NCBI RefSeq assembly: GCF_001194135.2
Contig: NC_069000.1
Location: 26,735,375 to 26,782,434, forward strand
DNA: 47,060 bases
Source: Octopus bimaculoides
Taxonomy: Eukaryota
Direction of reading: 5' to 3'
In this document: positions 278 through 45,922 of the stretch, one piece after another
Layout of the letters: every line of letters begins with the position of its first letter
Numbering within the stretch: the stretch's first letter is position 1
Translations under genes and position numbers: made by a program
The notes under the pieces: generated by a model
What the model saw: only the letters and a program-made list of their open reading frames with translations
Told to the model about the DNA's origin: nothing
The model's database searches: none

Positions 278-529
278 CTAGCCTCTCACCAGTCGGTTTG
301 TCGAAGGCAAACAGACGAAATAAAGATGCTTGGTTTTACAATTCCTGTTATTCAGCTTAGCAGCCGCTGATTCAATTGTAGTTTGGTAATGGAAGGTTAA
401 GGTCTTCCTTGATGCCTGCCAGAGAACAGTGTAAAAGTGCTTTGTGGAGGAGCGAGGTGTTGTCACGTAGAAGGTCTCAGGCTCAACTCGCTTAACAAAG
501 TGAAACTCTCTCTTTAAGTACGAGTTTTA

Positions 530-630
530 CTAAGCATGCGCAACTCAAGGGGCTTCCGGTGGTGAAGTCCCCTGCGCATGCGCAGAATAGTACTTCCTCA
601 ATGGCGGCTATAATTTCGCGCCACTACAGT
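530..630. promoter_or_regulatory. CpG-rich cluster of housekeeping-promoter-type motifs (host promoter or U3 of another LTR)
   Basis: GCATGCGCA 534-542 and TGCGCATGCGCA 573-584 (NRF1 type), CTTCCGGT 553-560 (ETS), AATGGCGGC 600-608 (YY1), TTTCGCGCC 614-622 (E2F), ACTACA 623-628. Confidence 0.5.
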
Positions 631-2289
631 ATTATCTTATTGAGAACCTTCATGTTACCATCATCCCAGACCCATGAGTACATAGTAAATTTTCTTTTCT
701 TCCTGCTTTTTATATATACATTGATCTCACATTTCATACATTCAAATACATTCCACCTCCACATCCATACAGCAATGTTATGCTGTCACATGGACTCATT
801 GACACACAATACGTCTACAATAAACAAAAATAAACAAATGTGATCCGAGAGGGAAATCAACATTCACATAAATGCATGGTTCTGTCTTTTCAAGACTGAA
901 GACATAGACGCTGCATGACTGAATTACTTTGCCAAAAGAACACTCAAACTGTTTGATATCCAATCGGAGAAGCAGATACAGAACAAACCCAAACATATTT
1001 GTCCCTTGTTTAAATTAATTCACAGGAATTTTGAAAAGCTTCAACATGTATTTTCTCCAACTACCCTTCAACAACAAGAAAGAGGAACTACCACAGAAAC
1101 AACAGTAACAGAAGCAACAACAACATGACCAGCAGCCACAGTCACTCCTCAATCCTGGCCCAGTTGATGACCCTTTAAATTCCACAATCAGCAGCCCTTC
1201 ACATTCTTCATTCCCTCGGAATGTGTCAACTGACCCAGCATCATCATTGCCATATTTCATCTTTCTCTACTGCTGCTACCACAACTAAACAACTACACAA
1301 GCCACAGTCACAGTCACTCCTCTAGACTTGCGCTATTGTCTCTTTATGACTGTGCCGATAACAGAACATACCACTAGGGTTTGAGAATTTGTATCACCCC
1401 AGATATGGGTCAGGTCTCCCTTTGAGGATGACAGAGCATGCCAAGAGTCATAGTGACATACATAGGGGAGATGGAGTGAAAGAAAGAGTTTATAAAGGGG
1501 AAAAGTGATGCTTGTGAATGTCAGTGTTTATACATTGTTTTCGTATTTTGTAATTTTTAAAATTTTTATCTTTTTTTGTTGTTTAATTTTGGTACATCTC
1601 AAAATAGCTTCACTTTTTCTCTTTGGTGCTTTGATATCCCCACTTTTCTATTATTGCACTTCTGCTACATAATGGCCAGGTTTGATTTTAAATTTAGCAG
1701 TCCATTGAAGGGGAGGAAAAATAAAATAAAATAAAATAAAGTTCTGGGTCATGTGGTGAGTGACCAAGAGACCAGCATGGTTAAATGATTTTGTTACAAC
1801 CTACCAGCCTTCATCCTCCTGCTCTGCACCTCCTCTGTCACATTCTAGCGAGTTAACTTGTATCCCCCCCCCCCCGCGGCCATCTCTCTTCTACCCATTC
1901 TGTTGGCAGATTTGGCCAGAATTAGTCCTGCACATCCTTTTACTCACTCCACAACTTCCATAACAGCCAGTCTGCTGCCATCGCCTCCTGCCACCCTGCT
2001 AGCTGAACCTCACTGCCAGTGTTAATGCTCTTCATCCACCACCTCTCCTGTAATAGCCAGCCTGCCTCCTGCATCCCACCAGAATTCCACTGCCAGAGTT
2101 AATGCTGTTCACCCAGCTACCCACTCAACCCCCAGCACCAATCTTTGCCTACCACTGTCACCTCCCCATCTGAATTCTAATTCTAATGCTGACCCCACTG
2201 ATGCTGCCAGTTCACCTCCAAGTTGTGTTCTCTGCACCTACACAAGTCGCTATTTGAAGACCATCAAATACCACTTGTGTAGTTTAAGT

Positions 2290-2477: not shown

Positions 2478-4772
2478 GTCTAAGCTACCACAGGAGCTGT
2501 GTTGGCATTACTAAGGTTCAAGCTGAAAGTTTTTCAAACTGGATATGCAACCAATGCCATATCAGCTCCAACATACTTAGTAGGGCAGAACCTTACTCTG
2601 ATGTCCAGATACCTGTTGAGGATTTTGCCCTTGCCCTCCAGGGCTTGTCCAAGTTGAAGCTCATCAATTGGATCTCTAAGGAAGCTTAGACTTGTTTCGC
2701 CTGTGTTCTCCCGAAACTGTTGAAGAACATCTGCCTATCCAACAACACCTCAAATTGACAGAAACTGTTCCTATTCCCTTTAGTCTCTCTCTGTGACAAA
2801 TGTGAATATTGGATCCCTTACTTCTTCCCTTAAATGGCATTTTGAGCTGTTCAAATCCACCCCCAACCACTGTTCATCTCAGGTAAGTGATCAGCACAAT
2901 CCTAAACACTGGTCAACCACCTAACTTAAACAATCTGTTAATGCCAAATTCAGCATATTTGATATTAAAGGGGTTGTTCGACTTCTCTCCTCTCTGAACT
3001 TCCTCACCCTGTGTACCCACAGACTCCCTCAATAAACTGAAGGAGAAACATCCTCTGGCCCCTCCAGATGACTACCTACACTGGTCTGACCTACCAGGTT
3101 TTCTACAACCTGTTTTCACCTGCAACAATGTTAGGAAGGTGACTCCATCTTTTCAAGTGGGTTCTGGCACTGGGATTGATGACTTACAACCCCAGTATTT
3201 CGAAGATGATATTTTCCTGTCAGCCACTGATGCTAGTCTTGAGCTCTTGGAGAAGCTAACACAGTTCATAAATTCTCTACATTTGTCCCTGTTCTTTGGG
3301 GCTTAACTATTTGGTCTCACCAAGCTCAATGGTGATTTTCGCTCCATAGCAGTTGGTTGTATTCTATGTCAGCTCACAGCAAAAGTGTGTCACAGTTTCT
3401 AACTGCCTGTCTACCAAATTTTCCCCCATTCAGCTTGGAGTGGGTACTAAGTTAGATTGTAACGCTGCTGCTCATGCCACTAGAGCTTTCATCAACTTGC
3501 CCTCTAAGTCTCCAAAGGTCATCCTCAAACTAGACCTTAAGAATGCCTTCAATTCCATCAGTTAGGACACATCATCCTCCATGCAGTAAAGGAGAATGCC
3601 CCACAGCTCTATCATTTTGCTTGGAAAGCTTATCAGAAACCGTCCTACCTCTCCTTTGGTGACCACTTCATCCCATCTGCCTCTCGAGTCCAACAGGGTG
3701 ACCCACTTGGACCTGCTCTATTTGCACTGGGTATTGATGATGTTACCAAGATAGCAGCTGACCTAGACTTGATTGTCTGGTATCTTGATGATGCTTGTAT
3801 GGAGTGGGGGTGGCCTCCTGGCAAGGTTCTTGCAACTGTGAGGCTGATGATTGACGAACTTGGTTGTAGGGGCCTTAGCATTAATAGTTTCAAATGTGAG
3901 CTCTGACTCCTCAACCATCCAGCTTCGCATCAGCAGATTGTAAACCTGTTTATAGACTCCTTCTCCTCTATCACAGTTCCTCCTTCATCAGCATCATGTT
4001 CTCTTGGAGCCTCAATTACTGACTGAGCCTTTGAGTCCATCTTTCAATCCAAAATTGCTAACTTTGAGCAACTTTTAAAAAATCTTGGGGTAACTGAGCC
4101 CCACCAAAGTTTTTTATACTGAGGAATTACTTGTCAATTCCTAAGTTATTGTATTTTCTCAGAGTTTGTCTCTCTAATGTTCTGACAACCTAATCTTCAG
4201 GTGACCAGGTTGCTTTGCCCAAGCAGTTTGGGGGTCTAGATCTGCACAAGTGCTCATCTTTATCCTGTTTCTTTCCTTCATCCCTGTTTCTTTCCTCCAT
4301 CCAGGCTTGCTCCTCTTTAGTAGGCAACATCCTCTCCTCTCCAACAAGGTCTAGTTCCAACAGAGAGATGGATGAATCTATGTTACAGTGGAGAGAGCTG
4401 GGTCTGACAATTCCTGTTACAGTTGAGTATAGATGGAAGTAGAGAGTATGGGACAAACTGCATTCACTTGTCACACTCAGCTAAACTTAATCATTAAGGG
4501 AGCCCTGGCTTGGATTAATATCCCCTCAGTTCTGGAGCTGGTGGGATTATCCAGAAGTGATAGTAAGAGACCAAGTGGTTTTACCCTCAGTTCCTGGGTA
4601 AGAAGTAGGTGCCTCATCTGGGAGGCTACAGTCTGTGATTCTTTTGCCCCCTCCCACATCCTGGATGCTGCGGTAAATGGAAGGGTCACTGCTTCTGTAG
4701 GTGAATAAACAAAACCCTGAAGTATTGAGACCTGACAGTGACCTGTCTCTTCCAGCTTGTTGCATTTGAGAT

Positions 4773-6626
4773 TATAGGAAAGTGGGTTATACATCTTTAG
4801 ATTGTATACCTGACTTCCTACTACAAAATTAAAGAAATAGACGGAACGCTGAACTCCAGACTAAACAACTTAAACAACACTTTATTTAGGTGGTAAACAT
4901 ATAAACACATCTTTAGTTCTTGTGTTACAGCTTCTGTGTGTATGAGCATAGTTGTTGGGACGTTGTTCTGTTCTTGTTGTGAGCGAGCTGTCTTGTGTAA
5001 GTCCGAAAGATGTAGAGACAGCTTTAGCACACGTCCATGCTCATGGTCGGCCGACCGTAAAAGAGAATGAATTGAGCGGGAAACNNNNNNNNNNNNNNNN
5101 NNNNNNNNNNNNNNNNNNNNNNNNNNNNNNNNNNNNNNNNNNNNNNNNNNNNNNNNNNNNNNNNNNNNNNNNNNNNNNNNNNNNNNNNNNNNNNNNNNNN
5201 NNNNNNNNNNNNNNNNNNNNNNNNNNNNNNNNNNNNNNNNNNNNNNNNNNNNNNNNNNNNNNNNNNNNNNNNNNNNNNNNNNNNNNNNNNNNNNNNNNNN
5301 NNNNNNGTACAAACACACACAAAGAAAATTCAAAGAAATGAAATGTACACTTGTGAAATACATGCATGCAACGTATAAATGAAATGACAATGACAAAACA
5401 ACCGTGATGACAACTGTCCAGGAAACTGGAATCACGCGATGTAAAAGTCTGAGTGTTTTTTTTCCCTGAAAGGAAAGAAAATGTATGAGTGCACAAGTGT
5501 GTGTGTGAGAAAAAACACAGAACAAGTGAAAGTGTCTGTAGTATAGACTGCGAAAAATCCCAAAACACCAAGATAGAGTACATTGATGAAGACGTCAGCG
5601 CAGGAACTGCTATAGCTGTGTTCTGTATGTGTGGTGGTAATGATGTTGGCAGTGGTAATGATCTGTTGAAACTTGGCAACGTCAGGAGGAAAGCTTGTAA
5701 TTGGTAGTAGTAATTGTTGTCGTCACGGTGGTAATCTTGGTTGGCGCACGACGCTGGTGGCAAAAAGGCTGTTTGGTGATGAGTGTTTGAAGAGGTACGC
5801 TTTTACAGAACGATCGACAGACAAATCTCCGTACGACTATTAGCGAAAACCTCGAAGAAAAATTTTCTTAACCCAAGATGAAAGAACGACCGTGCGAAAT
5901 GAATAACAAGAGTTAATGTGTGGCATAAAAAATGTATGTGTATGTGAGAGTGTGAAATGCGACATATAAGAACATAATAAAAAACAGGCNNNNNNNNNNN
6001 NNNNNNNNNNNNNNNNNNNNNNNNNNNNNNNNNNNNNNNNNNNNNNNNNNNNNNNNNNNNNNNNNNNNNNNNNNNNNNNNNNNNNNNNNNNNNNNNNNNN
6101 NNNNNNNNNNNNNNNNNNNNNNNNNNNNNNNNNNNNNNNNNNNNNNNNNNNNNNNNNNNNNNNNNNNNNNNNNNNNNNNNNNNNNNNNNNNNNNNNNNNN
6201 NNNNNNNNNNNNNNNNNNNNNNNNNNNNNNNNCAGAGTCCATGCTGCGTTTTTTCTTCGTCGGGGTCACCACTTTAGTGGAAAGTGGGTTATACATCTTT
6301 AGATTGTATACCTGACTTTCTACTATAAAATTAAAGAATATGACGGAACGCTGAACTCCAGACTAAACAACTTAAACAACATTTATTTAGGTGGTAATCT
6401 TATAAACACATCTTTAGTTCTTGTGTTACAGCTTCTGTGTGTATGAGCATAGTTGTTGGGACGTTGTTCTGTTCTTGTTGTGAGCGAGCTGTCTTGTGTA
6501 AGTCCGAAAGATGTAGAGACAGCTTTAGCACACGTCCATGCTCATGGTCGGCCGACCATAAAAGAGAATGAATTGAGCGGGAAACGCTTGCTTGTTTAAT
6601 TCTACGCATGCGCAGGAGTTACTACA
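4773..6626 (-). mobile_element. Short non-autonomous Gypsy-like LTR element
   Basis: Near-identical direct repeats 4773-5084 (runs into a gap) and 6273-6626 with TGTAGT..ACTACA-type ends (both left termini mutated). AGAT on both flanks (4769-4772, 6627-6630). On the minus strand TGGTGACCCCGACG (6271-6258) follows the 5' LTR and is complementary to the 3' end of tRNA-Trp. No gag/pol motifs in the visible interior; two gaps. Confidence 0.85.
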
Positions 6627-13660: not shown

Positions 13661-14459
13661 AGAGGCAATTTAAAATTACTTGGAGTTATTATACAAGCCG
13701 GTCCAATGTGTTCTCCCATTTTTCTTTAAACATGGTGGGGGCAGATTTAGCTGTTAAAGCTTTCTAATTGGCTTAAGGAACTGTTTCATGCAAAGATAAC
13801 AATACTCCCCACCTCACAAATACAAACACATACGTAAATAAAAATGTAGAAAGCATTGGTATATTGGTACAGTTTTATATAAATATATACACATTGAATT
13901 GGATGCATAACTGATTGCAGCTCGGTATACATGGAAAAGTAATCAAGTGTGAGTGCCATACAGGTCCCATACATATCTGGTAGAGTACAGACCTTTGCAT
14001 ATATACATTGAGAAGTACATATTTCTAATACATACATACATACATACATACACACATATATATATANNNNNNNNNNNNNNNNNNNNNNNNNNNNNNNNNN
14101 NNNNNNNNNNNNNNNNNNNNNNNNNNNNNNNNNNNNNNNNNNNNNNNNNNNNNNNNNNNNNNNNNNNNNNNNNNNNNNNNNNNNNNNNNNNNNNNNNNNN
14201 NNNNNNNNNNNNNNNNNNNNNNNNNNNNNNNNNNNNNNNNNNNNNNNNNNNNNNNNNNNNNNNNNNNNNNNNNNNNNNNNNNNNNNNNNNNNNNNNNNNN
14301 NNNNNNNNNNNNNNNNNNNNNNNNNNNNNNNNNNNNNNNNNNNNNNNNNNNNNNNNNNNNNNNNNNNNNNNNNNNNNNNNNNNNNNNNNNNNNNNNNNNN
14401 NNNNNNNNNNNNNNNNNNNNNNNNNNNNNNNNNNNNNNNNNNNNNNNNNNNNNNNNNNN

Positions 14460-19341: not shown

Positions 19342-21010
19342 AGGTGCAGGTGTGGCTGTGTGGTAAGGAGTTTGCTTCCCAGTCACATGATTCTAGGTTC
19401 AGTCCCACTGTGTGCCACTTTGGGCAAGTGTCTTCTACTATAGCCTTGGGTTGACCAGAGATCTGTGAGTGGATTTGGCAGACAGAAGCTGAAAGAAGCC
19501 TGTCGTATATATCATCATCATCATCGTTTAACGTCCGCTTTCCATGCTAGCATGGGTTGGACGATTTGACTGAAGACTGGTGAACCAGATGGCTACACCA
19601 GGCTCCAATCTGATTTGGCAGAGTTTCTACAGCTGGATGCCCTTGCTAACGCCAACCACTCTAAGAATGTGGTGGGTGCTTTTACGTGCCACCGGCACAA
19701 AGGCCAGTCAGGCAGTACTGGTAACGGCCATGCTCAAAATGGTGTATTTTACGTTACACCTGCACAGCAGCCAGTCCAGTGGCACTCACAACGATCTCGC
19801 TCGAATGTCTTTACATGTGCCACCAGCACAAGTGCCAGGAAGGCGACGCTGGGCACAGGTGCCATCACGATTTCGCTTTTGCTTGCCCCAACAGGTCTTT
19901 GCAAGCCGAGTTTAGTGTCCAATGAAGGCGACAACATTGGCATGGGTGCCAGTCATCGAATTTAGTTCAATTTCGATTNNNNNNNNNNCCCCAACAGGTC
20001 TTTGCAAGCCGAGTTTAGTGTCCAATGAAGGCGACAACATTGGCATGGGTGCCAGTCATCGAATTTAGTTCAATTTCGATTTCACTTGCATCAACAGGTC
20101 TTCGCAAGCGGAGTTTAGTGTCCAAGGAAGGAAGGTATGCATAAGTGGGCTGGCTACACCCCTGGCAGAGGCCTTGGATATTGGTCTCACTTGACTTGCC
20201 AGGTCTTCTCACGCACTGCATATTTCCAAAGGTCTCTGTCAGAAGTCATTGCCTCGGTGAGGCCCAATGTTCGAAGTTCGTGCCTCACCACCTCATCCCA
20301 GGTCTTCCTGGGTCTACCTCTTCCACAGGTTCCCTCAACTGCTAGGGTGTGGGACTTTTTCACACAGCTATCCTCATCCATTCTTGCCACATGACCATAC
20401 CAGTGCAATCGTCTCTCTTGCACACCACAACTGATGCTTCTTATGTTCAACTTTTCTCTCAACGTACTTACACTCTGTCTAGTATGCACACTGACATTAC
20501 ACATCCATCGGAGCATACTGGCTTCATTCCTTGTGAGCCTACTCATGTCTTCAGCAGTCATGGCCCATGTTTCACTGCCATGTAGCATGGCTGTTCGTAC
20601 ACATGCGTCATACAGTCTGCCTTTTACTCTGAGTGAGAGGCCCTTTGTCACCAGCAGAGGTAAGAGCTCTCTGAACTTTGCCCAGTCTATTCTTATTCTA
20701 GCAGCTACACTTTCAGCGCACCCTCCCCACTACTAACTTGGTCACCTAGATATCGGAAGCTATCAACTAAGTCTAGTTTTTCTCCTGTATATATCTATCT
20801 GTGTGTGTCTTTGTGTTTGTCCTCTCATCACCACTTGACAACAGGTGTTGGTGTGTTTATGACCCTGTAACTTAGCAGTTCAGCAAAAGGGTATGATAGA
20901 ATAAGTAATAGGCTCAAGAAATAAGACCTCGGGTCGAATTGTTCAACTAAAACCCCCCAAGATGGTGCTCCAGCATTGCCGCAGTCAAATGACAGAAACA
21001 AGTAAAAGAA
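19342..21010 (+). mobile_element. tRNA-derived SINE, family B, split by an RTE insertion
   Basis: Head 19342-19512 and tail 20787-21010 (GGTGCTCCAGCAT..GCAGTCAAATGA..AACAAGTAAAAGA) together match the intact copy at 35073-35472. Confidence 0.85.
19513..20786 (-). mobile_element. 5'-truncated, well-preserved RTE LINE
   Basis: ORF 20187-20651 (RVKGRLYDACVRTAMLHGSETW..RLHWYGHVARM..GRGRPRKTWDEVV), long 3' UTR, (GAT)n tail at 19513; flanked by GTATATAT at 19505-19512 and 20787-20794. Confidence 0.92.
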
Positions 21011-21494: not shown

Positions 21495-21722
21495 GGAAAA
21501 AATATATGAAAAACTAGCAATAAAACAAAACTGAAATGTAGTTATGTTCCCAATAAAAAATTTAAAAGAATAACTAGTTCTCTCTCCCCATTTACAAACA
21601 TGCATAGACACACATGTGTGATGGTGTGAGAAAGAGAAAAGGAAAGAGAGTGTGAGAAAGAGATGTGTTTGCAAATAAATATGTATGATTAGGTATAAAT
21701 ATGTGTGTGTGTGTGTGTGTGT

Positions 21723-21767
<45 letters not shown>

Positions 21768-21935
21768 TGTGTGTGCATAGGTACAATTGTTACATATATA
21801 TATGTACATATGGTATGTGTGTATGTACACATGTACATACAGACACACAGATACATATACATACATATACACAGATACATATTCATATATACAGATACAC
21901 ACACACACAAACACTCATGTATCTTTATATATATA
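21393..21935. repeat. Cluster of (TG)n/(TA)n/(TACA)n microsatellites just 3' of the zinc-finger ORF
   Basis: Directly visible at about 21393-21490 and 21700-21935. Confidence 0.95.
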
Positions 21936-22233: not shown

Positions 22234-25200
22234 CTAAACAGGACTAAATCGGCACCGAGCAGGAATGCAGATTGGTTGATGCATCTTTGTATGCATCTTC
22301 AATGAAGACGACTGTGAAAATTTCTTATTGCAGAGTCCACATTGGAAAGGTTTTTCACCTGAATGAGTGCGCAGGTGAGCAGTGAGGTTCGATGATTGGG
22401 AAAACTTACGAGGACACCATTTGCAAACGAATGGCTTTTCTCCTGAATGAACACGCAAATGTCGACGCAGATCAGACATCTTTAGGAATGATTTGGCACA
22501 GATAGAACAAGGATACCGATGCACACCACTGTGGTAGCGCATATGAGAAGCCAACTGTTTCTGCAGTGGAAAAGTACGAGAGCACAAAGAACACTGAAAC
22601 TCACTTTTGTTCTGTTTATCACTGACTGATAAGAAAGACCTTGAATGTGACATTGTATCTTCAGTGGAAAAACGACTTTGATTGGTTTCTTGAGTTTTGA
22701 AAGAACTTTTTTGTTGGTTATGGTCTAACTCTTTGGTATTGAGGTGTAGGATTGGCTTTAAAACAGACCCTACTTTGCACTGAATGTTCCAAATGGATTT
22801 GGAAGAATCTTGAAAAACTTTTTCTGTTCTTCTAATGGAACTATGAGAAATGGAGGAAGACAATGAAGAGTAAGCAGAAGAGGAATGAATATTAGAAATA
22901 GAAGAGTCTCTTTCGGAAGACTTCTTAAACTGAACCTTCAAACTTGATGCATGTGTCCCGTTAAGAAATTTTTGTCCTTTAGAAAATGTGTAAGAAACTG
23001 CTGCTGTACCATGGCGGTTGTGTGTCTTCAAGTGTCCCATCAAATTAGACTTCTGCGAAAAGGTACGCTGACATAGGCCACATCCATATGGCTTTTCTCC
23101 AGTGTGCACTCGAGTGTGTCGATTTCGATCAGAGGATGTGAAAAATGCCTTATCACAGTAATCGCAGTGGTAGGGTCGTTCACCTGTATGTGTGCGGAGA
23201 TGGTAACGCAAGTGGGAAGACTGTGAAAATGTACGGAAACAGATTTCACACTGGTTTGGGGACTTCTCTTCAGAGAATTTTTTGTTCCCAGCCACTACAG
23301 GTTGAGAAGGTGCTGACTGTTCTTTCTCATTTGCCTTGGTAACTGGCACAAGCTTTTCAACTAAAACTACATCAGATTTTTCCTTTACCAAGTCACATAC
23401 TTTTTCCTCTGTTGCAACATTTTCTGGATCTTTATCTGACAAACTTAGAGATTTGAGAAGGTCGCTAGTTTCCTTGCTAGTTTCTGTTGTTTGTAGATCA
23501 GATGGCTGCTCTTCCATCAAATCAACCTTTCCAGTGGTTACATTCATGGTTCCCAAACTCCTGTTCAGTCCTTTGTTGTTATAGAAGCTTTCATTAGATT
23601 TGAATACTGATCTAGGTGGAATTCTGCCAGATAAATCTTTCTGGGAAGCAGATGTTGATATTGTAGAATCAAAGGCTTTAACATTTGTGGCCCAATTCAG
23701 GTTATCTTCTTGATGAGGTTGTTGGTTACACTGGTGTTTAGAAAGCTGAATGCTATCTGGGAAAGATTTTTCACACACAGCACAGCTTAGTGTAGCTGAC
23801 AAATATGTGACCATATCAGATAGTGAATCATCAGAAATAGTAACTGTTCCAGATTTCACAGGTAGCCATGATGAATCTGACTTATTGGATGTATGTGGAG
23901 TAGACATTGTCTTTTCTTTCTTCTTGTACTCTGGCTTTTTCACCAAACTTGGATGAGAAGCTTTGAGATGATTAGTGAGACTGTAATAATTAGTAAACTT
24001 CTGTTGACAAGCAGGACAACAGAAATTGATTTCAGAATGATTGGTGATTGTAGAGTGAGTTTGTTGATGTCTGGCCAACATAGAAGAAGTTGAAAATTTT
24101 TTGGGACATAAACGACATCGATAAGGTCTATCACCAGTGTGAGAGCGAGTGTGGATGAGTAAATTTGAACGCTGAGTAAATCTTTTTCGGCAATGGTTGC
24201 ATTTGAAAGGTTTCTCACCTGTATGAACTCGTGTGTGACGTTTCAGATCAGATGATGTGAAGAAAGCTTTCCCACAATGTCTGCAGCCATAAGGTCTTTC
24301 TCCAGTGTGTGTTCGAATGTGATAAGTTAAGTGACATGCCTGAACAAAAGTACGACCACATATTTCACACTGGTGCTGTTTACGATTATTTTCTAAACTT
24401 GGTGAACTTATTGGAAATTTTGGCCTTATTTTGCCTTCTTGATTTAATGAAGTTTTAGATTGTTTCATAACAGCCTTGGGATCATTCCCTGATTCATCCA
24501 CAACAGCTTGTGTAATTGTAGTGTCTTTCTGTATGGATGCATTTTGAAAATTTACCTGCCTTTTCAAACTTTTTACCTGATTTTTAGATTTAGCCTTGGA
24601 TTTTGTAGCATAATAAGCTACACTTTGTGTATTTTCATTGCATCTTTTGTAAGCTGGGGATTCTTCAGTAAATGCAGAGTCACCAGTTAACCAACTGTGT
24701 CCTGCAATAGAGATCTCTAGAGGTTTAACACTTGGCCTATAGTTGTGAGTGGTCTTAGAAATTAATCTATCGGACTTAGACCTGTTGAATAATTCAACTT
24801 CTTTGGAATCAGCAGCATCTTTTCTTTCCTGTGAGACAGAGTCTGCATCAAAATTTGATGCAGATGTTATGTAGGTCGATGGATTGTCTTGAAACTTTTT
24901 GTCCCCTTTATTAAGTTGCCAATGACCAGATCTAACCTGGAGAAGTGTTATTGGTTGAATTGTATTTTCTTTTTTGTGTCTGTCACTCTTCTTATGCACT
25001 ACAACATGCTGACCAAGACTAGAGAGGTGTTGAAAGCGTTCTAAACACATACTACATTGAAATAATTTATTGCCAGGATTCTCCACCTTATTTTGTCTTT
25101 GGTATAACTTTTTAGACAAGGAAATGGGATAATATGTTCTACTTTGGGTTTCAACATTACTGACACCAGGCTCAGCAGAATGTTTCACACTGAATGTATG

Positions 25201-28200
25201 TTGTCTCCCAGCATAGAGTTTCTTATGGTGCCTAACCTGAACAAGGCTGGTTGTTACCCAACAGCATACATTGCACACATACTTGCAGATTGAAGTGTGT
25301 TTCTTCAAATGCAGTAATAAAAAGACATTGAGATAGAATCGACGGGAACAGTAGCCACATCTGAATGGCTTACGTTGTCTATGTCTTGAAGAATGTTGTC
25401 TGAGTGCAGATCTGGTGAAAAAGGATTTTGAGCAGACTTTACAGGAATAATGTTTCTGCTCATTATGAGTCATGATGTGATTGATCAAAAGGCTGGAGTG
25501 GTCAAAGGACTTCATACAAAATGGACATTGGAAACCACTAGACTGCAAATGAGGTGCTAATGTTGTCGTCATACTGACTAATTTCTTTGAACCAGCTGGA
25601 TCCTCAGATTCTACAGAAGCTGGTAAAGATGTAAGGTACATGTTACCATCATTGCTGACATATGTGCTAAGATCTAAAGTAATATTTTCTGAAGGCTCTG
25701 CCTTATTTGAAGGGGATTCATTGCAACTGCTGTTTTTTGTTTCACTGTAGGAGTTAGTTATCACTTCTCCTTTATCTGCATTATCTTTTCCATCAACTAT
25801 CTCTTTGGGTTCTTCCTCAACATGGGACTGTGGCTGAGGAGAACTTAAGTAACCTGCCATAGTTTCAAGGGGTTTTGCAGTTTTCTTCTCATGTACTTGG
25901 ACAGCTGACTCAGAGGAATTTTCAAGTTCACAATGGGTTGCCATATGATATTTGAGAAAGTTTGCTCGTGAAAAGCACATTTGGCATATATTGCATTTGT
26001 AAGGTTTTTCACCTGTATGTAATCTTCGATGACGATATAACATGGCTGTTGAGAAGAATTCACGGGGACAGAAATCACATTTGTGTGGCTTTACACCCGA
26101 ATGTGTTTTTACATGAGAAATAAGATTAGAACTTTGATTGAATCTTTTCTCACAATAGTCGCAAGCAAAGGGTTTCTCACCAGTGTGTATACGTGTGTGA
26201 CGCTTGAGATCTGATGATGTAAGGAACTCTTTACCACATGTATTGCAAATATGACAACGTTTCTGTTTGGTAATTCCACTTCTGACATTTAGATGGTTAT
26301 GAGCATGTGCGGTGTGCTTGGAAAGTAGATGAATGCTGCTGAAAGTTCGCAAACACAATTTGCATTTGTAGCTTTTGGTCGTATGACATGCAAGATGTTT
26401 ACTGAGAAGTGGAAAGTCTGAAAAGGATTTATTGCAGTGACTGCATCTGTATGGCCGTTGTGATGTAGCATGAGTGCGTAAATGGGACACAAGATTTGAA
26501 TTCTGTGTAAAACGCTTGGCACAAAACTCACATTTGAAAGGTTTTTCCCCAGTATGAATGCGGGTATGGCGATTCAAATCGGACGGCTTAGCAAAGGCCT
26601 TGCCACAATATACACACTTATATGGACGGTCACCAGTGTGTGTCCTGATGTGATATGTCAGGTGATTGGCCTGTTGGAATGTCTTACTACACAACATACA
26701 TGCATACTGGTTCTCTTGGCCACACAGCTTATCATCACCTTGGATAGAAGTTCTCTTCAAATCCCTGCCATCATCTACGTTAGCATTATTTACAGTGGTT
26801 ATATTGTTATCTGTACAGTTGCTCTCTCTAACACATACACCATTTGATGATGATAAAGACAGGGGAACAACATTTCCCATTTCATTTTTATTGGCATCAG
26901 TGAGTAGGTACCCTTTACTAGCTACTTTGTTAGTACCATCATGTGACTCAGATGACAAATGTGGTTCTTCATCAGCACAAATTTTAGATGCAAGTTTATC
27001 CTGAAGTGGAGAAGACAAATCAATGCAGGTAATTTCTGGGTCAATTTTCAGTCTTTTGTCTGACCTTTCAGAATAGTTACAGTTTAATGTGTTAATATCT
27101 ACAAATTCTTCACACAAGTAGGAAGACTCACCACTGTTTGTTATATTATTAGAATCTCTGTCAAAAGCAAAACTTTCTAGATTTGTTAGAGCCTGCATGT
27201 CAGGTATTTGGCATTGAATATCCTCTGATATACAAGGACTGCTACTTGGAATGTTCAGTGCAGACACAGCAAAGGTATTAGGAATAAGACTGCTGCACCC
27301 TGAAGACTGTTCACTACTATCATCACTAACATAGATAGGCAAAGTATTACAGTTGGTGGAACCAATGTCTCTGCTAGTTTCCCATTCCTCCAAAATTCCT
27401 TCACTTGTTACTAAACATGTGGGAATTTCATGAACTCTTGTTGATGAATCCCTGCCAGAGTTCACTTCTATATCCTTGCCTAATAATGACACTGGTTCTG
27501 TACCTGAGTAAGATGTTGAAACAGTTGAGTTACCTGAAGGTGTTAACAGCATCATATCATTCGTGCTTGTTAGATCAGTCACATTTGCAGTTTCCTCTAA
27601 TTTTTGGCAGTTGTCAAAACCTAATTCAACTTTTATGTTGGATCCAGTCTGGCTTGGAGTTCGACTGATGCTATTTTTCACTATTCTACTACTTGGTTTT
27701 GTTTCATTGACACCGGCTTCTTTAGGATTTTCTACTCCTTCTGCAACTTTATCACTATTATATAACAATGATTGGAGGTTGTCAGCTAATGCAATTTCAC
27801 TCTCAGAACTACTACTGCTTGTGTTGTTACTGCATGAGCTTTCTTTGCTGAAGTAGCCTGCAGCATCAGAAGAAGATTGGACTGCTGGCTCCTCGGTAAT
27901 GACTTTGTCGTTAAAATCAAGTAGCACTGTTTTAACAGTAAATTGGTTATCAGGTGCCAAACCCTGAAGGACAGACTTACGATCTACTTCATCTTTTGTG
28001 ACCACTAAAGGTAGTGGATCAACATCCATACTGCTATCACACAAGTCGTGTTCCACCTTGAGATGTTGCACAAGATTACTGACTTCAAGAAACTGTCTTG
28101 AACAAAGGCTGCACATTAATGGGTTTTGACCTTCAACTGGGAAATTTTCAGCTGTGGTAGAATTTTCTTTTGCCACATTTGTTGGTGAAGAACTGATACC

Positions 28201-29178
28201 AGACATTAAGCTAGACAGCAGCTGTTTATCCCAACTACTAACAGTTGATGGGAAGAAGTCAAGAGGAACCACTTTATCTTCTAGTTTCTTTATCTCAACT
28301 TGTTTAGAAACAATATTTAACAGTCCCTGAGCGCCATTATTATTTCTGTTAGTAGTAATATTATTATTGTTGATTGTATCATTAGGTGGGCTCTTGGTAG
28401 TACTGCTTTTTTTGGCAATGTCACCTTTGTTACTGATAATGTCAGTAGGAGTGCTGTTATCATTGTGGTGTACACGAATGTGTTGTGTAAGGGCAGCCCG
28501 TGTTGTGAAACCAATACTACACTGCATGCAGTGGTGTGGATAGACCTTTGTATGAGTGCGCAAATGAACTTTAAGGTTGGAGTTCTGTGTAAACCTCTTT
28601 CCACAGAAACGACATTGAAATGGCTTCTCTCCAGTGTGGATGCGAGTGTGTCTGTTAAGATCAGATGAAGTGGCAAAACGTTTTTCACAAAACATGCATC
28701 CATACGGTCTCTCACCTGTGTGCATTCGAACATGGATTGTCAGCATAACTCCACTTACAAATACTTTGCCACAAATGTTACATTCATGGTGACCTCGTTT
28801 GCTGTTATCACCATGCTGTGACACTTTATGTGAATTGAGAAGGTCAACACTGCTAAAACTTTTATTGCATTTTTGGCAGCAGTATTGTTTAGTAATTGGT
28901 GAGTGGTGGCCAGTACTTTCTTCATCTTCAGTAGCATGGGTGCGCATATGACTTACAAGGTTATTCTTCCGACTAAAACGGCGAGAACACCACTTGCAGA
29001 AAAATGGCCTCTCCCCAGTGTGTACACGTGTGTGTTGGTTAAGATGAGACATCGTAGAGAACACCTTATCACATGATCTGCATTGATAAGCCTTGTAGCC
29101 AGGGAAGATCTGTAGATATTTATTAAAATGGCCAGAATAGTTAAAGATTTGTAAGAAATACTTGCAAGTATAATCCAC
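22234..29178 (-). CDS. Large multi-cluster C2H2 zinc-finger protein (about 35 fingers; N-terminus unresolved)
   Basis: 6945 bp stop-free frame. I count 33 canonical Cx2Cx12Hx3-4H fingers plus 2 degenerate ones, many with TGEKP/TGERP linkers, in clusters separated by Ser/acidic spacers. No KRAB, SCAN, BTB or ZAD domain seen. The track start at 29178 is GTG, and the first in-frame ATG lies inside finger 1. Confidence 0.93.
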   Translation of the reverse strand: MDYTCKYFLQIFNYSGHFNKYLQIFPGYKAYQCRSCDKVFSTMSHLNQHTRVHTGERPFFCKWCSRRFSRKNNLVSHMRTHATEDEESTGHHSPITKQYCCQKCNKSFSSVDLLNSHKVSQHGDNSKRGHHECNICGKVFVSGVMLTIHVRMHTGERPYGCMFCEKRFATSSDLNRHTRIHTGEKPFQCRFCGKRFTQNSNLKVHLRTHTKVYPHHCMQCSIGFTTRAALTQHIRVHHNDNSTPTDIISNKGDIAKKSSTTKSPPNDTINNNNITTNRNNNGAQGLLNIVSKQVEIKKLEDKVVPLDFFPSTVSSWDKQLLSSLMSGISSSPTNVAKENSTTAENFPVEGQNPLMCSLCSRQFLEVSNLVQHLKVEHDLCDSSMDVDPLPLVVTKDEVDRKSVLQGLAPDNQFTVKTVLLDFNDKVITEEPAVQSSSDAAGYFSKESSCSNNTSSSSSESEIALADNLQSLLYNSDKVAEGVENPKEAGVNETKPSSRIVKNSISRTPSQTGSNIKVELGFDNCQKLEETANVTDLTSTNDMMLLTPSGNSTVSTSYSGTEPVSLLGKDIEVNSGRDSSTRVHEIPTCLVTSEGILEEWETSRDIGSTNCNTLPIYVSDDSSEQSSGCSSLIPNTFAVSALNIPSSSPCISEDIQCQIPDMQALTNLESFAFDRDSNNITNSGESSYLCEEFVDINTLNCNYSERSDKRLKIDPEITCIDLSSPLQDKLASKICADEEPHLSSESHDGTNKVASKGYLLTDANKNEMGNVVPLSLSSSNGVCVRESNCTDNNITTVNNANVDDGRDLKRTSIQGDDKLCGQENQYACMLCSKTFQQANHLTYHIRTHTGDRPYKCVYCGKAFAKPSDLNRHTRIHTGEKPFKCEFCAKRFTQNSNLVSHLRTHATSQRPYRCSHCNKSFSDFPLLSKHLACHTTKSYKCKLCLRTFSSIHLLSKHTAHAHNHLNVRSGITKQKRCHICNTCGKEFLTSSDLKRHTRIHTGEKPFACDYCEKRFNQSSNLISHVKTHSGVKPHKCDFCPREFFSTAMLYRHRRLHTGEKPYKCNICQMCFSRANFLKYHMATHCELENSSESAVQVHEKKTAKPLETMAGYLSSPQPQSHVEEEPKEIVDGKDNADKGEVITNSYSETKNSSCNESPSNKAEPSENITLDLSTYVSNDGNMYLTSLPASVESEDPAGSKKLVSMTTTLAPHLQSSGFQCPFCMKSFDHSSLLINHIMTHNEQKHYSCKVCSKSFFTRSALRQHSSRHRQRKPFRCGYCSRRFYLNVFLLLHLKKHTSICKYVCNVCCWVTTSLVQVRHHKKLYAGRQHTFSVKHSAEPGVSNVETQSRTYYPISLSKKLYQRQNKVENPGNKLFQCSMCLERFQHLSSLGQHVVVHKKSDRHKKENTIQPITLLQVRSGHWQLNKGDKKFQDNPSTYITSASNFDADSVSQERKDAADSKEVELFNRSKSDRLISKTTHNYRPSVKPLEISIAGHSWLTGDSAFTEESPAYKRCNENTQSVAYYATKSKAKSKNQVKSLKRQVNFQNASIQKDTTITQAVVDESGNDPKAVMKQSKTSLNQEGKIRPKFPISSPSLENNRKQHQCEICGRTFVQACHLTYHIRTHTGERPYGCRHCGKAFFTSSDLKRHTRVHTGEKPFKCNHCRKRFTQRSNLLIHTRSHTGDRPYRCRLCPKKFSTSSMLARHQQTHSTITNHSEINFCCPACQQKFTNYYSLTNHLKASHPSLVKKPEYKKKEKTMSTPHTSNKSDSSWLPVKSGTVTISDDSLSDMVTYLSATLSCAVCEKSFPDSIQLSKHQCNQQPHQEDNLNWATNVKAFDSTISTSASQKDLSGRIPPRSVFKSNESFYNNKGLNRSLGTMNVTTGKVDLMEEQPSDLQTTETSKETSDLLKSLSLSDKDPENVATEEKVCDLVKEKSDVVLVEKLVPVTKANEKEQSAPSQPVVAGNKKFSEEKSPNQCEICFRTFSQSSHLRYHLRTHTGERPYHCDYCDKAFFTSSDRNRHTRVHTGEKPYGCGLCQRTFSQKSNLMGHLKTHNRHGTAAVSYTFSKGQKFLNGTHASSLKVQFKKSSERDSSISNIHSSSAYSSLSSSISHSSIRRTEKVFQDSSKSIWNIQCKVGSVLKPILHLNTKELDHNQQKSSFKTQETNQSRFSTEDTMSHSRSFLSVSDKQNKSEFQCSLCSRTFPLQKQLASHMRYHSGVHRYPCSICAKSFLKMSDLRRHLRVHSGEKPFVCKWCPRKFSQSSNLTAHLRTHSGEKPFQCGLCNKKFSQSSSLKMHTKMHQPICIPARCRFSPV

Positions 29179-39763: not shown

Positions 39764-39878
<115 letters not shown>

Positions 39879-41089: not shown

Positions 41090-43900
41090 CAATCATCTGT
41101 CTTTTGTTACCTCCTCTGTGAGGCTCAACCACCTGAACTTGGTTTTCATTATTTTGTTCCATGTCTTCCTAGGTCTTCTTTTCACAGGTTCCATCCATCT
41201 TAAACAATCAGGTGTCCTAATCTATGCACATCATATGATCATGCCAACATACTCTTCTCTTTTGCACACTACATCTGATGCCTCTTATACCCAATTTTTC
41301 TTTCAACACATTTGTACTTTGTCATACATGCACACTGACATTGTACATCCAGTGCAGCATGCTAGTTTCATTTCTTTCTAGTCCTCACAGGTCCTTTATA
41401 GTAACTGCCCACATTTATCTACCAGCATTACTGTTCATAAGCAAGCATCATACAATCTTCCTTTTGCTGTGAAAGAGAACCTTTTGTTACCAACAGCAGT
41501 AGTAGCTCTCGCAACCTTTTTCCATCCTATTCTTATTCTGGCAACTATACTTTCAGAACATCTGCTTTCACTGCATATTTGATCACATACTATCTATTAC
41601 TTCTAAGGATCCTCCTGGACATTTGAGAAATCTATTTACCATCTGTTCTCATTGCTCCTACATAACTGCAACAGAGTCTATTTTCTTTAATAATGATTCC
41701 ACTACACTTCTAATGTACCCAAAGTTTGCACTGGGAACACCATATAGAATTGCTACCTACACATTTTCTACATATTGAACAGGGTCATTTTCCTGAAGGA
41801 GTTAGTGTACTCTGTTTACTTGTTTATTAGAGCTTTGGTTTTTGCTAAGTTAACTTCTAAAATTCAGCTATAAGAACAAAGTCATTAGTACAGAGGAGTT
41901 CACATGGGTTACTGGTTTTAAGCTTCTCAATCCTGGTGAACTACTCCTACACCTCTAGGAAATAACAGAGGAATTCAAGACAGGATGCCCCTGGGAGCTC
42001 CTCTATGCTGACGACCTTGCTCTTATTACTGAACCACTATCAGAACTAGAGGAGAAGTTTCAGGTGTGGAAACAAGGATTAGAATCAAAGGGCCTTAGAG
42101 TCAACCTAGCTAAAACCCAAGTCCTGATAAGTAGGAAAGCAGACAAACCACAAATCCCTTCAGGTAGATGGCCCTGCTCGATCTGTAGAAAAGGGGTAGG
42201 TAGAAACTATAAGATGTACCCAGTGTAAGCTATGAACACATAAGAGGTGCAGCAATATCGAAGGAAGGCTAACTGGGAAGATAGTTTTTGTATGTGGCAG
42301 ATGCTAAGGAGCAATAAACACTGAAAATGTGCAGAGAACAACTTCTGCCACATTCCAGGGAGAAAAAATACAAGTAGTTGATAGCTTTCGTTGCTTAGGT
42401 GACCAAGTCAGTAGTGGGGGAGGGTGCACTGAAAGTGTAGCTGCTAGAATAAGAATAGCCTGGGCTAAGTTCAGAGAGCTCTTACCTCTGCTGGTGACAA
42501 AGGGCCTCTCGCTCAGAGTAAAAGGCAGACTGTATGACGCATGTGTACGAACAGCCATGCTACATGGCAGTGAAACATGGGCCATGACTGCTGAGGACAT
42601 GCGTAAGCTTGCAAGGAATGAAGCCAGTATGCTCCAATGGATGTGTAATGTCAGTGTGCATACTCGACAGAATGTAAGTACCTTGNNNNNNNNNNNNNNN
42701 NNNNNNNNNNNNNNNNNNNNNNNNNNNNNNNNNNNNNNNNNNNNNNNNNNNNNNNNNNNNNNNNNNNNNNNNNNNNNNNNNNNNNNNNNNNNNNNNNNNN
42801 NNNNNNNNNNNNNNNNNNNNNNNNNNNNNNNNNNNNNNNNNNNNNNNNNNNNNNNNNNNNNNNNNNNNNNNNNNNNNNNNNNNNNNNNNNNNNNNNNNNN
42901 NNNNNNNNNNNNNNNNNNNNNNNNNNNNNNNNNNNNNNNNNNNNNNNNNNNNNNNNNNNNNNNNNNNNNNNNNNNNNNNNNNNNNNNNNNNNNNNNNNNN
43001 NNNNNNNNNNNNNNNNNNNNNNNNNNNNNNNNNNNNNNNNNNNNNNNNNNNNNNNNNNNNNNNNNNNNNNNNNNNNNNNNNNNNNNNNNNNNNNNNNNNN
43101 NNNNNNNNNNNNNNNNNNNNNNNNNNNNNNNNNNNNNNNNNNNNNNNNNNNNNNNNNNNNNNNNNNNNNNNNNNNNNNNNNNNNNNNNNNNNNNNNNNNN
43201 NNNNNNNNNNNNNNNNNNNNNNNNNNNNNNNNNNNNNNNNNNNNNNNNNNNNNNNNNNNNNNNNNNNNNNNNNNNNNNNNNNNNNNNNNNNNNNNNNNNN
43301 NNNNNNNNNNNNNNNNNNNNNNNNNNNNNNNNNNNNNNNNNNNNNNNNNNNNNNNNNACCATTCGAATGTGGTCATAACCAGCGTTGCCTTACTGGCACT
43401 TGTTCCGGTGGCACATGAAAAAACATTCAAGTGATATTGTTTCCAGTGCCGCTGGACTGGCTCCTGTGCAGGTGGCATGTAAAAAATATCACTTGAGTGT
43501 GGCCGTTGCCAGTACTGCCAGACTGGCCCTCGTGCCGATGGCACATAAAAGCACCCACTACACTCTCGGAGTGGTTGGCGTTAGGAAGGGCATCCAGCTG
43601 TAGAAACTCTGCCAGATCAGATTGGAGCTTGGTGCAGCCATCTGTTCGCCAGTCCTCAGTCAAATCGTCCAACCCATGCTAGAATGGAAAGCGAACATTA
43701 AACGATGATGATGATGATTGCTAACTCTCACCTTACTAACAGCTCTCCTGTACATAGCTTGAACAGCTCTCTTTAGCCATTCTTCTACTCCTAGCTTCCA
43801 CAGCAACCACCAGATCAGGGAGTGAGGAGCTCTACTGATGGCTTTCTCCAGGTTGATGAAAGCCAAGTAAAGCAAATTACTTCTGATTAAATAATTCCCC
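41090..43900 (-). mobile_element. Older RTE LINE split by a younger opposite-strand RTE
   Basis: Minus-strand pieces 43717-43875 (YLAFINLEKA..VQAMYRRAVSKVRVSN) and 41090-41960 (GVVHQ, VNLAKTKAL, MLHWMYNVSVH, GRPRKTW) are consecutive parts of one RT. Confidence 0.7.
41958..43716 (+). mobile_element. 5'-truncated, well-preserved RTE LINE (contains a gap)
   Basis: TGCPWELLYADDLAL at about 41980, ORF 42329-42685 near-identical to the 20187-20651 family, 3' UTR after the gap, (GAT)n tail 43704-43716. Confidence 0.9.

Positions 43901-44248: not shown

Positions 44249-44395
<147 letters not shown>

Positions 44396-45827: not shown

Positions 45828-45922
<95 letters not shown>
45796..45922. repeat. 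(TG)n/(CA)n/(TA)n microsatellite
   Basis: Directly visible. Confidence 0.97.

Follow-up and report, generated by a model that had tools for sequence, protein, structure and literature searches.

A giant octopus zinc-finger protein with six ancient copies of one predicted DNA-reading finger pair

Introduction

C2H2 zinc-finger proteins that combine many separate finger clusters with internally repeated modules are already known, and here we describe one in which a single module is present in six copies. It is encoded in a 47,060-nucleotide stretch of Octopus bimaculoides DNA (hereafter the window; chromosome CM046620.1, assembly GCA_001194135.2), and its module is centred on two adjacent fingers whose recognition helices, written from position -1 to +6, are of the types xxSD(L/R)xR and QxSNLxx (the SD and the QSN finger). 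What distinguishes it from the known proteins is the copy number of this one module together with the retention of its contact residues. The experimentally established precedent for one chain with several heads for one site is the HIVEP/Schnurri (ZAS) family, to which we liken the octopus protein by function only: these proteins, too, are very large, and their widely separated finger pairs each bind GGGGNNNNCC, as stated in a passage of PMC3048431 that cites Fan and Maniatis 1990. They differ in having two heads instead of six or seven, each of which forms part of a composite ZAS domain that also has acidic and Ser/Thr-rich regions.

ZNF236 is likewise a giant, of about 1750 residues and about 29 fingers, with clusters separated by long spacers and with no effector domain among its precomputed Pfam families. 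It carries three modules twice each (KPSDLVR-VKSTLTA-TxGSLKV-TSGHRKx, KSSHLKQ-SxGVLKx-TNGSLxR and KPSQLxR-QKxALQx-QKGNLxx), which are conserved in Priapulus, Lingula, Tachypleus, Asterias, Glandiceps and a primate, whereas the octopus protein has just one such module, in six or seven copies. Having compared six sequences we rejected orthology between the two: no module is shared, the clusters differ in order and are not collinear, and ZNF236 contains no SD..R-Q.SNL pair. The SALL/Spalt proteins also carry several widely spaced, mutually similar double-finger clusters, and the second finger of each bears the SAL-box helix TKGNLK; this helix is absent from the octopus protein, which we do not count as a member. 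Only one SALL cluster is known as the main DNA reader, unlike the arrangement considered here, and ZFC4, one of these clusters, recognizes a short AT-rich motif and binds at dispersed sites (PMC9672407, PMC9838217).

The nearest natural adjacent helix pair is found in fingers 4-5 of GFI1/Senseless (QKSDMKK, then QSSNLIT). GFI1 is, however, built as one array of six contiguous fingers behind an N-terminal SNAG repressor domain, has Lys and not Arg at +6 of the first helix, and does not repeat the module. With 33 fingers in about ten clusters, and only the one pair similar, the octopus protein does not belong to this family, although no search was aimed at SNAG. We regard the value of the present case as moderate, the architecture having precedents in ZNF236, HIVEP, SALL and other giant proteins of octopuses.

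Results

The gene and its repeated finger pair

A mechanical open reading frame (ORF) of 2314 codons occupies positions 22234..29178 on the minus strand of the window. An earlier reading made from the sequence alone (the sequence-only reading) had taken these as the limits of the gene, which holds for the ORF; the annotated coding sequence begins with an ATG at 29052, which is ORF residue 43, and its product has 2272 residues (P0122). This protein maps to chromosome CM046620.1 as one called gene, and the annotation has no further called gene within 10 kb of it. Because its O. vulgaris counterpart (CAI9737562, 2276 residues) is 97% identical and an O. sinensis protein (XP_036366687) shares a 90% cluster with it, this is a real protein-coding gene of O. 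bimaculoides, with one coding exon and a multi-cluster C2H2 product. A regular-expression parse of the ORF yields 33 distinct C2H2 fingers in about ten clusters, separated by spacers of 73-443 residues (111, 443, 128, 73, 201, 228 and 135). The fingers follow the pattern C-x2-4-C-x12-H-x3-5-H and score above the Pfam gathering thresholds, with 385.6 bits for zf-C2H2 (PF00096; cut-off 25.2) and 441.2 bits for zf-H2C2_2 (PF13465; cut-off 40).

Six adjacent finger pairs of the SD-QSN type are spread along the protein (modules M1 to M6, Table 1). All six helix pairs quoted in the sequence-only reading are present exactly as written, in adjacent fingers, and three of them are indeed preceded by the QxxHLxY fingers that it named. 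Within every pair the linker is the canonical HTGEKP(F/Y) or HSGEKPF. A fourth finger, of the type xxxMLxR or xxAALTQ, follows the pair in three copies (TRAALTQ, STAMLYR and TSSMLAR), and the module is probably larger, judging from these helices, than had been recognized. The SD finger of M5 has Arg at helix position +4 in place of the structural Leu; its helix, TSSDRNR, is identical in O. bimaculoides, O. vulgaris and O. sinensis, and the substitution may weaken or alter this head.

Contact residues are retained among otherwise diverged copies

Over the 51-residue cores of the six modules, mean pairwise identity is 82% at the contact positions -1, 2, 3 and 6, compared with 24% in the variable part of the beta-hairpin and 20% at helix positions 1 and 5 (contact columns above variable non-contact columns, Mann-Whitney p = 0.002). 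Of the eight contact columns only two vary, position -1 in the SD finger, which is T or K, and position +6 in the QSN finger; the other six are invariant. The opposite pattern holds in a set of 119 generic giant zinc-finger proteins, with 22% identity at contacts and 45% in hairpins. Animal C2H2 proteins are usually studied as contiguous arrays in which the contact residues change fastest, and here this relation is inverted. The sequence-only reading had also described the framework residues as different between copies; this is correct for helix positions 1 and 5 and for the variable part of the hairpin, the only positions that have diverged, but conservation across the copies extends to the TGEKP linker, the core Phe and the zinc ligands, and to much of the RHTRxH segment.

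Synonymous sites are saturated between the copies: the mean proportion of synonymous differences (pS) among the six cores is 0.90, and an amino acid shared by two copies is encoded by the same codon 41.8% of the time, compared with the 42.5% that the codon usage of the ORF alone would predict. Such saturation excludes recent duplication and gene conversion as the source of the likeness, and leaves retention under selection, in agreement with what had been proposed for the contact residues. The copies are ancient internal duplicates, and the base-contact positions are the part that has been kept between them.

The ordered pair is rare in other zinc-finger proteins

As a background we used 394 other zinc-finger proteins with 7255 fingers and 5310 adjacent finger pairs. 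Helices of the ..SD..R and Q.SNL.. types each account for 1.8% of these fingers, whereas the ordered pair is found in 4 of the 5310 adjacencies, and no single protein has more than two. In a protein of this size about 0.008 such pairs would be expected, and six are observed in roughly 21 adjacencies. Other giant zinc-finger proteins of octopuses, O. bimaculoides LOC106883442 (P0043) and O. vulgaris LOC115211127 (P0108), are 2400-2800 residues long and also repeat a module of their own, 7-10 times. Their modules (xxxDLKV-ISRNLTA-QKSALTV-YSxSLxV and xxSALxx-QxAHLDV-QNxNxNR) are entirely different, and they are 24-28% identical to the protein described here over 28-31% of its length. The SD-QSN pair is therefore not a default of zinc-finger proteins.

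We have also searched for the module more widely. A metagenome scan with module-derived patterns returned 80 loci with 749 fingers, at most 58% identical and without a single SD-QSN pair. A profile search with the aligned modules against a collection of 5.8 billion proteins gave only matches of up to 140 residues, apparently through a limit on match length, and among these the query's own protein was absent and no module-bearing relative was seen. Searching with the whole protein, we recovered, beyond the Octopus orthologues, generic many-finger proteins with scores summed finger by finger and none with the module.

Each copy is conserved between species

Between O. bimaculoides and O. vulgaris (locus L001) the synonymous divergence (dS) of the whole gene is 0.049 and the ratio of nonsynonymous to synonymous divergence (dN/dS) is 0.23. 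For the fingers alone the ratio falls to 0.042, and for the spacers it rises to 0.39. The six cores have accumulated 12 synonymous and no nonsynonymous changes, M4 by itself again having no nonsynonymous change, and all fingers are under strong purifying selection in this comparison, and nothing points to the kind of positive selection on contact residues that is typical of fast-evolving arrays. Whether helix positions are better conserved than the framework depends on the comparison made: the helix contacts are the more conserved among paralogous copies, but between the two species both classes are nearly frozen (two nonsynonymous changes at helix positions and three at non-helix finger positions).

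A more distant relative was found by an exhaustive search with a 588-residue spacer (residues 239-826) against 1.84 billion representative proteins, which returned one true relative (P0243; E = 2e-50, 42% identical). It is encoded on a 5.6-kb Logan contig from run SRR9970007 (L002) and spans octopus residues 1 to about 1560 if one frameshift in the contig is allowed for. This shift, at about 3690-3730 of the contig and between M2 and M3, is probably an assembly or sequencing error, because the frame downstream of it continues the orthologous protein for more than 500 residues. Our guess is that the contig comes from a decapodiform or another distant cephalopod.

Spacers of the octopus protein and P0243 are 29% identical, whereas the module fingers match at 16-21 of 21 positions and the non-module fingers 19-22 at 10-13 of 21. 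All contact residues of M1-M3 are identical, which strengthens the case for their selective retention. The orthologous cores match at 50 (M1), 45 (M2) and 45 (M3) of 51 residues, compared with 28-39 of 51 for paralogous cores; M2 retains its copy-specific 'KP', and the frameshift in the contig lies just upstream of M3. Over the finger clusters pS is 0.92 (saturated) and nonsynonymous divergence (dN) is 0.10. As orthologous cores are closer to each other than paralogous ones, and synonymous sites are saturated, the duplications predate a deep split and each copy has been preserved individually.

A seventh module has decayed in Octopus

The distant orthologue has about 50 additional N-terminal residues followed by an intact module with the helices QLGHLTY, KMSDLSR and QKSNLMS (L002 635-1030), which we call M0. 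In O. bimaculoides its first finger survives as a relic collinear with the intact finger and equal to it in length, and in O. vulgaris a TAA stop lies at the 3' end of this relic. The annotated start codon falls inside the helix of the second finger, so that only the RKNNLVS finger of M0 is complete in the protein; the remains of the module match the M0 core of P0243 at 36 of 51 residues. As this alignment shows, the copy nearest the N-terminus has degenerated within the Octopus lineage, and its first finger is now 5' leader. The estimate of about six reading heads thus stands for Octopus, where six are intact, but ancestrally there were at least seven. A relic lying over the start codon shows how such proteins lose heads.

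We considered, and rejected, an upstream coding exon with an effector domain: the O. vulgaris stop is located just before finger 1, and the region above the ATG is a decayed finger with no site for splicing in. Pfam, applied to the whole ORF and to the longer N-terminus of the distant orthologue, yields zinc-finger families only, in line with the absence of a recognized effector domain noted earlier; KRAB, SCAN, BTB/POZ, ZAD and SET/PR domains were found in neither. The O. sinensis and O. vulgaris genes are annotated as 'zinc finger protein Xfin-like'. Xfin itself is a Xenopus protein with one long uninterrupted run of fingers. The 'Xfin-like' protein of Xenopus tropicalis (P0059) aligns with 25-37% of the query at 29-30% identity, has a KRAB domain (PF01352) and is without the SD-QSN module, and we do not regard the octopus gene as an Xfin orthologue. 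On this comparison the name reads as a generic best-match label and is uninformative; our literature search found no paper connecting 'Xfin' with octopus.

Table 1. Positions of the gene, its finger modules and the conserved spacer islands. Residues are numbered in the ORF; helices are given in N- to C-terminal order.
Feature	Position in window	Strand	ORF residues	First Cys of SD/QSN pair	Helices or remarks
Annotated coding sequence	22234..29052	-			single exon, 2272 aa + stop codon; ATG 29052-29050
M0, relic of first finger (QxxHLxY type)	29083..29175	-			DYTCKYFLQIFNYSGHFNKYLQIFPGYKAYQ; upstream of annotated start; second Cys and both His ligands lost
M0, remains of fingers 2-3	28936..29088	-			TMSHLNQ (was KMSDLSR), RKNNLVS (was QKSNLMS)
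Module M1	28465..28788	-	131-238	161/189	SGVMLTI, TSSDLNR, QNSNLKV, TRAALTQ
Isolated finger 9	28048..28119	-			EVSNLVQ; flanked by spacer islands LLSSLMSG, PLPLVV, FTVKTVLLDF
Module M2	26470..26706	-	825-903	855/883	QANHLTY (aa 827), KPSDLNR, QNSNLVS
Two more fingers after M2	26299-26451	-			DFPLLSK, SIHLLSK
Module M3	25930..26253	-	976-1083	978/1006	TSSDLKR, QSSNLIS, STAMLYR, RANFLKY
Non-module fingers 19-22	24994..25533	-			HSSLLIN, TRSALRQ, LNVFLLL, HLSSLGQ; least conserved fingers
Module M4	24055..24375	-	1602-1708	1632/1660	QACHLTY (aa 1604), TSSDLKR, QRSNLLI, TSSMLAR
Module M5	23020..23256	-	1975-2053	2005/2033	QSSHLRY (aa 1977), TSSDRNR, QKSNLMG
SD finger of M5	23089-23151	-	2005-2025		TSSDRNR; Arg at +4
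Module M6	22279..22599	-	2194-2300	2224/2252	LQKQLAS, KMSDLRR, QSSNLTA, QSSSLKM
Spacer island			316-329		LLSSLMSG
Spacer island			388-393		PLPLVV
Spacer island			412-421		FTVKTVLLDF
Spacer island			583-599		HEIPTCLVTSEGILEEWE
Spacer island			686-699		SYLCEEFVDINTLN
Spacer island			713-722		PEITCIDLSS
Spacer island			1168-1182		DLSTYVSNDGNMYL

Discussion

Predicted DNA recognition and proposed mode of action

In the canonical code a finger with Arg at +6, Asp at +3 and Thr or Lys at -1 reads GC(T/G), one with Gln at -1 and Asn at +3 reads nAA, and one with Gln at -1 and His at +3 reads nGA; arrays bind antiparallel to the DNA. Taken together these rules give the predicted site 5'-nAA GCn (nGA)-3', as the sequence-only reading wrote it. 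Among the nearest solved finger pairs is that of the designed protein Aart, with the adjacent helices DKKDLTR-QRANLRA (PDB 2I13); GFI1, with its QKSDMKK-QSSNLIT pair, is also among the structure matches (PDB 2KMK), and a GFI1-type pair is seen in P0241. We take the Aart pair to sit on AAA-ACC and the GFI1 pair to read an AATC core, and both would presumably fit a pattern of NAA followed by xCx.

The comparisons show that a single ancestral unit, two to four fingers long (QxxHLxY, xxSDLxR, QxSNLxx, xxxMLxR), underwent at least six internal duplications before Octopus split from the species of the distant orthologue, and that purifying selection has since held each copy near-constant. Each module would be a short DNA-reading head with canonical TGEKP linkers. 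All heads would read the core 5'-(n)AA-GC(n)-3', three of them extending to about 5'-nAA GCn nGA-3', and they would differ at their flanks, through the residue at -1 in the SD finger, which is T or K, through that at +6 in the QSN finger (V, S, I, G or A) and through the neighbouring fingers. Heads of two or three fingers are expected to bind weakly on their own, and it is for this reason that we infer multi-site engagement: affinity and selectivity would be gained by gripping several copies of the core at once, which the long, poorly conserved and probably flexible spacers would permit and which would favour clusters or arrays of the motif, while the short conserved spacer islands might recruit partner proteins. 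That the protein carries ancient repeated DNA-reading heads sharing one core and engaging several copies of it at once is the reading towards which we lean, with confidence somewhat above even. It would make the protein a natural example of selection for multivalency in DNA reading, and it predicts one common core and an affinity that scales with the number of heads and sites.

Several points weigh against multi-site reading. The predicted site is derived from a recognition code that is unreliable for individual fingers: the Aart helix DKKDLTR has Arg at +6 and yet was selected for ACC, which marks a limit of the code. The heads differ at flanking contacts and in their neighbouring fingers, and their extended sites may differ accordingly; M5, moreover, has the Arg at +4. 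The core AAGC(G/T)NGA is not enriched in the window, with 9 occurrences against 8.0 expected, though it is too short for this count to inform. Our check against the distant orthologue covers the N-terminal 1500 residues (M0-M3), the age of the duplications is bounded by synonymous saturation only, and simultaneous binding by several heads is a step that we infer.

A bolder version would have the protein act as a polydentate 'molecular comb', in which six (ancestrally seven) near-identical heads on flexible tethers bind arrays of AAGC-type sites, so that it serves as a reader of a tandem or dispersed repeat or as a chromatin-bridging factor, conserved across deep relatives (probably cephalopods), with the spacer islands docking its partners. 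We consider this doubtful in its full form.

Alternative explanations

The strongest competing explanation is a conventional transcription factor with redundant or alternative heads. These would bind similar DNA, but only one or a few of them at a time would act on a single site, much as other multi-cluster zinc-finger proteins draw on part of their finger set; there would be no cooperative multi-site binding, looping or repeat recognition, and the other clusters would contact protein or RNA. The differences between modules at flanking contacts and neighbouring fingers would suit such a factor, as would the loss of M0 from a gene that was itself kept, the lack of local enrichment of the core motif, and the conservation of the non-module fingers and spacer islands, which suggests further functions. 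Yet the same six contact residues persist in all six copies past synonymous saturation, when redundant copies should drift, and a lone head of two or three fingers should, from general knowledge, bind weakly; we treat this rival as a genuine but tentative possibility. Roles away from DNA, or in pursuit of transposons, seem to us less likely. The repeated fingers could in principle be protein- or RNA-binding units, for self-association or for repetitive RNA, whose 'contact' residues are kept for that interface. C2H2 fingers are able to mediate dimerization (PMC12774644), and some Pfam matches, below threshold or overlapping, are to zf-C2H2_jaz, a type of finger that binds dsRNA. The conserved residues are, however, the exact base-contact positions (the classic Arg +6, Asp +3, Asn +3 and Gln -1), the linkers are of the canonical TGEKP type that is a hallmark of DNA-binding arrays, and the closest solved pairs are DNA-bound, all of which makes this explanation improbable.

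The sequence-only reading had set the gene against the great expansion of C2H2 genes in coleoids, and one could accordingly see it as a fast-evolving member of that expansion, targeting transposable elements and owing its repeats to recent tandem duplication or gene conversion. Zinc-finger expansions in metazoans, the octopus included, have been tied to transposable elements (PMC10547256, PMC12513265), and repeat copies flank the gene in the window; neither the cephalopod C2H2 expansion paper (PMC12513265) nor the zinc-finger and transposon paper (PMC10547256) describes this gene. Against such an origin stand the saturated synonymous sites between copies, the copy-specific residues conserved across species, a finger dN/dS of 0.04 with no excess of change at the helix, the one-to-one conservation of the modules in the deeply diverged P0243, and the lack of a close paralogue among the search matches. 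We therefore find this account very improbable, and the expansion, marked by many recent paralogues and lineage-restricted clades, is probably not the right context for a gene that is conserved, has an orthologue at saturated synonymous divergence and shows no close paralogue among the matches returned; the gene seems to stand apart from the recent coleoid expansion with which it would otherwise be grouped. Scarcely credible, finally, is a recurrence by chance, or one that merely reflects a pair common to zinc fingers. Neither helix type is rare by itself, but their ordered combination is so infrequent in the background proteins and the metagenomic fingers, and so frequent here, that the counts speak against it, as do the different modules of the other octopus giants.

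Spacer islands and other observations

Seven short islands within the spacers are conserved in P0243 (Table 1) and are candidate partner-docking motifs. In several of them acidic or Ser residues come after a hydrophobic core (TVLLDF, CLVTSE, CIDLSS), which recalls SUMO-interaction motifs, a likeness that is pure speculation on our part. An AlphaFold model of residues 299-438 around the isolated finger 9, built from a three-sequence alignment and aimed at extra strands such as those of dimerizing fingers, has a mean predicted local distance difference test score (pLDDT) of 41, too low to be informative.

Further repeated modules were noted in other proteins along the way. Argonauta hians has a giant zinc-finger protein as well (P0035), with its own module repeated 7-10 times. 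The module of P0043, TASDLKV-VSRNLTA-QKSALNV-YSNSLKV, is loosely similar to KPSDLVR-VKSTLTA-TxGSLKV of ZNF236, and P0043 might be a cephalopod ZNF236 relative. In P0244, a protein of 1252 residues met in the spacer search, the pair KKQHLTT-REGNLKR is repeated five times at a constant spacing of 154 residues.

Two near-identical ORF fragments (…KGLSLRVKGRLYDACVRTAMLHGSETWAMTAEDM…) flank the gene in opposite orientation, at 20187-20651 on the minus strand and 42329-43378 on the plus strand; Pfam gave no match for either ORF, and they are presumably copies of a dispersed repeat or of a retroelement tail. Runs of N, corresponding to assembly gaps, lie at about 5100-5500, 13950-14450 and 42650-43350 and appear as runs of X in the ORF translations. 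The window also contains microsatellites: (TG)n at 21702-21775, (GA)n at 39788-39875, (AGAC)n at 44253-44395 and (AC)n at 45830-45908.

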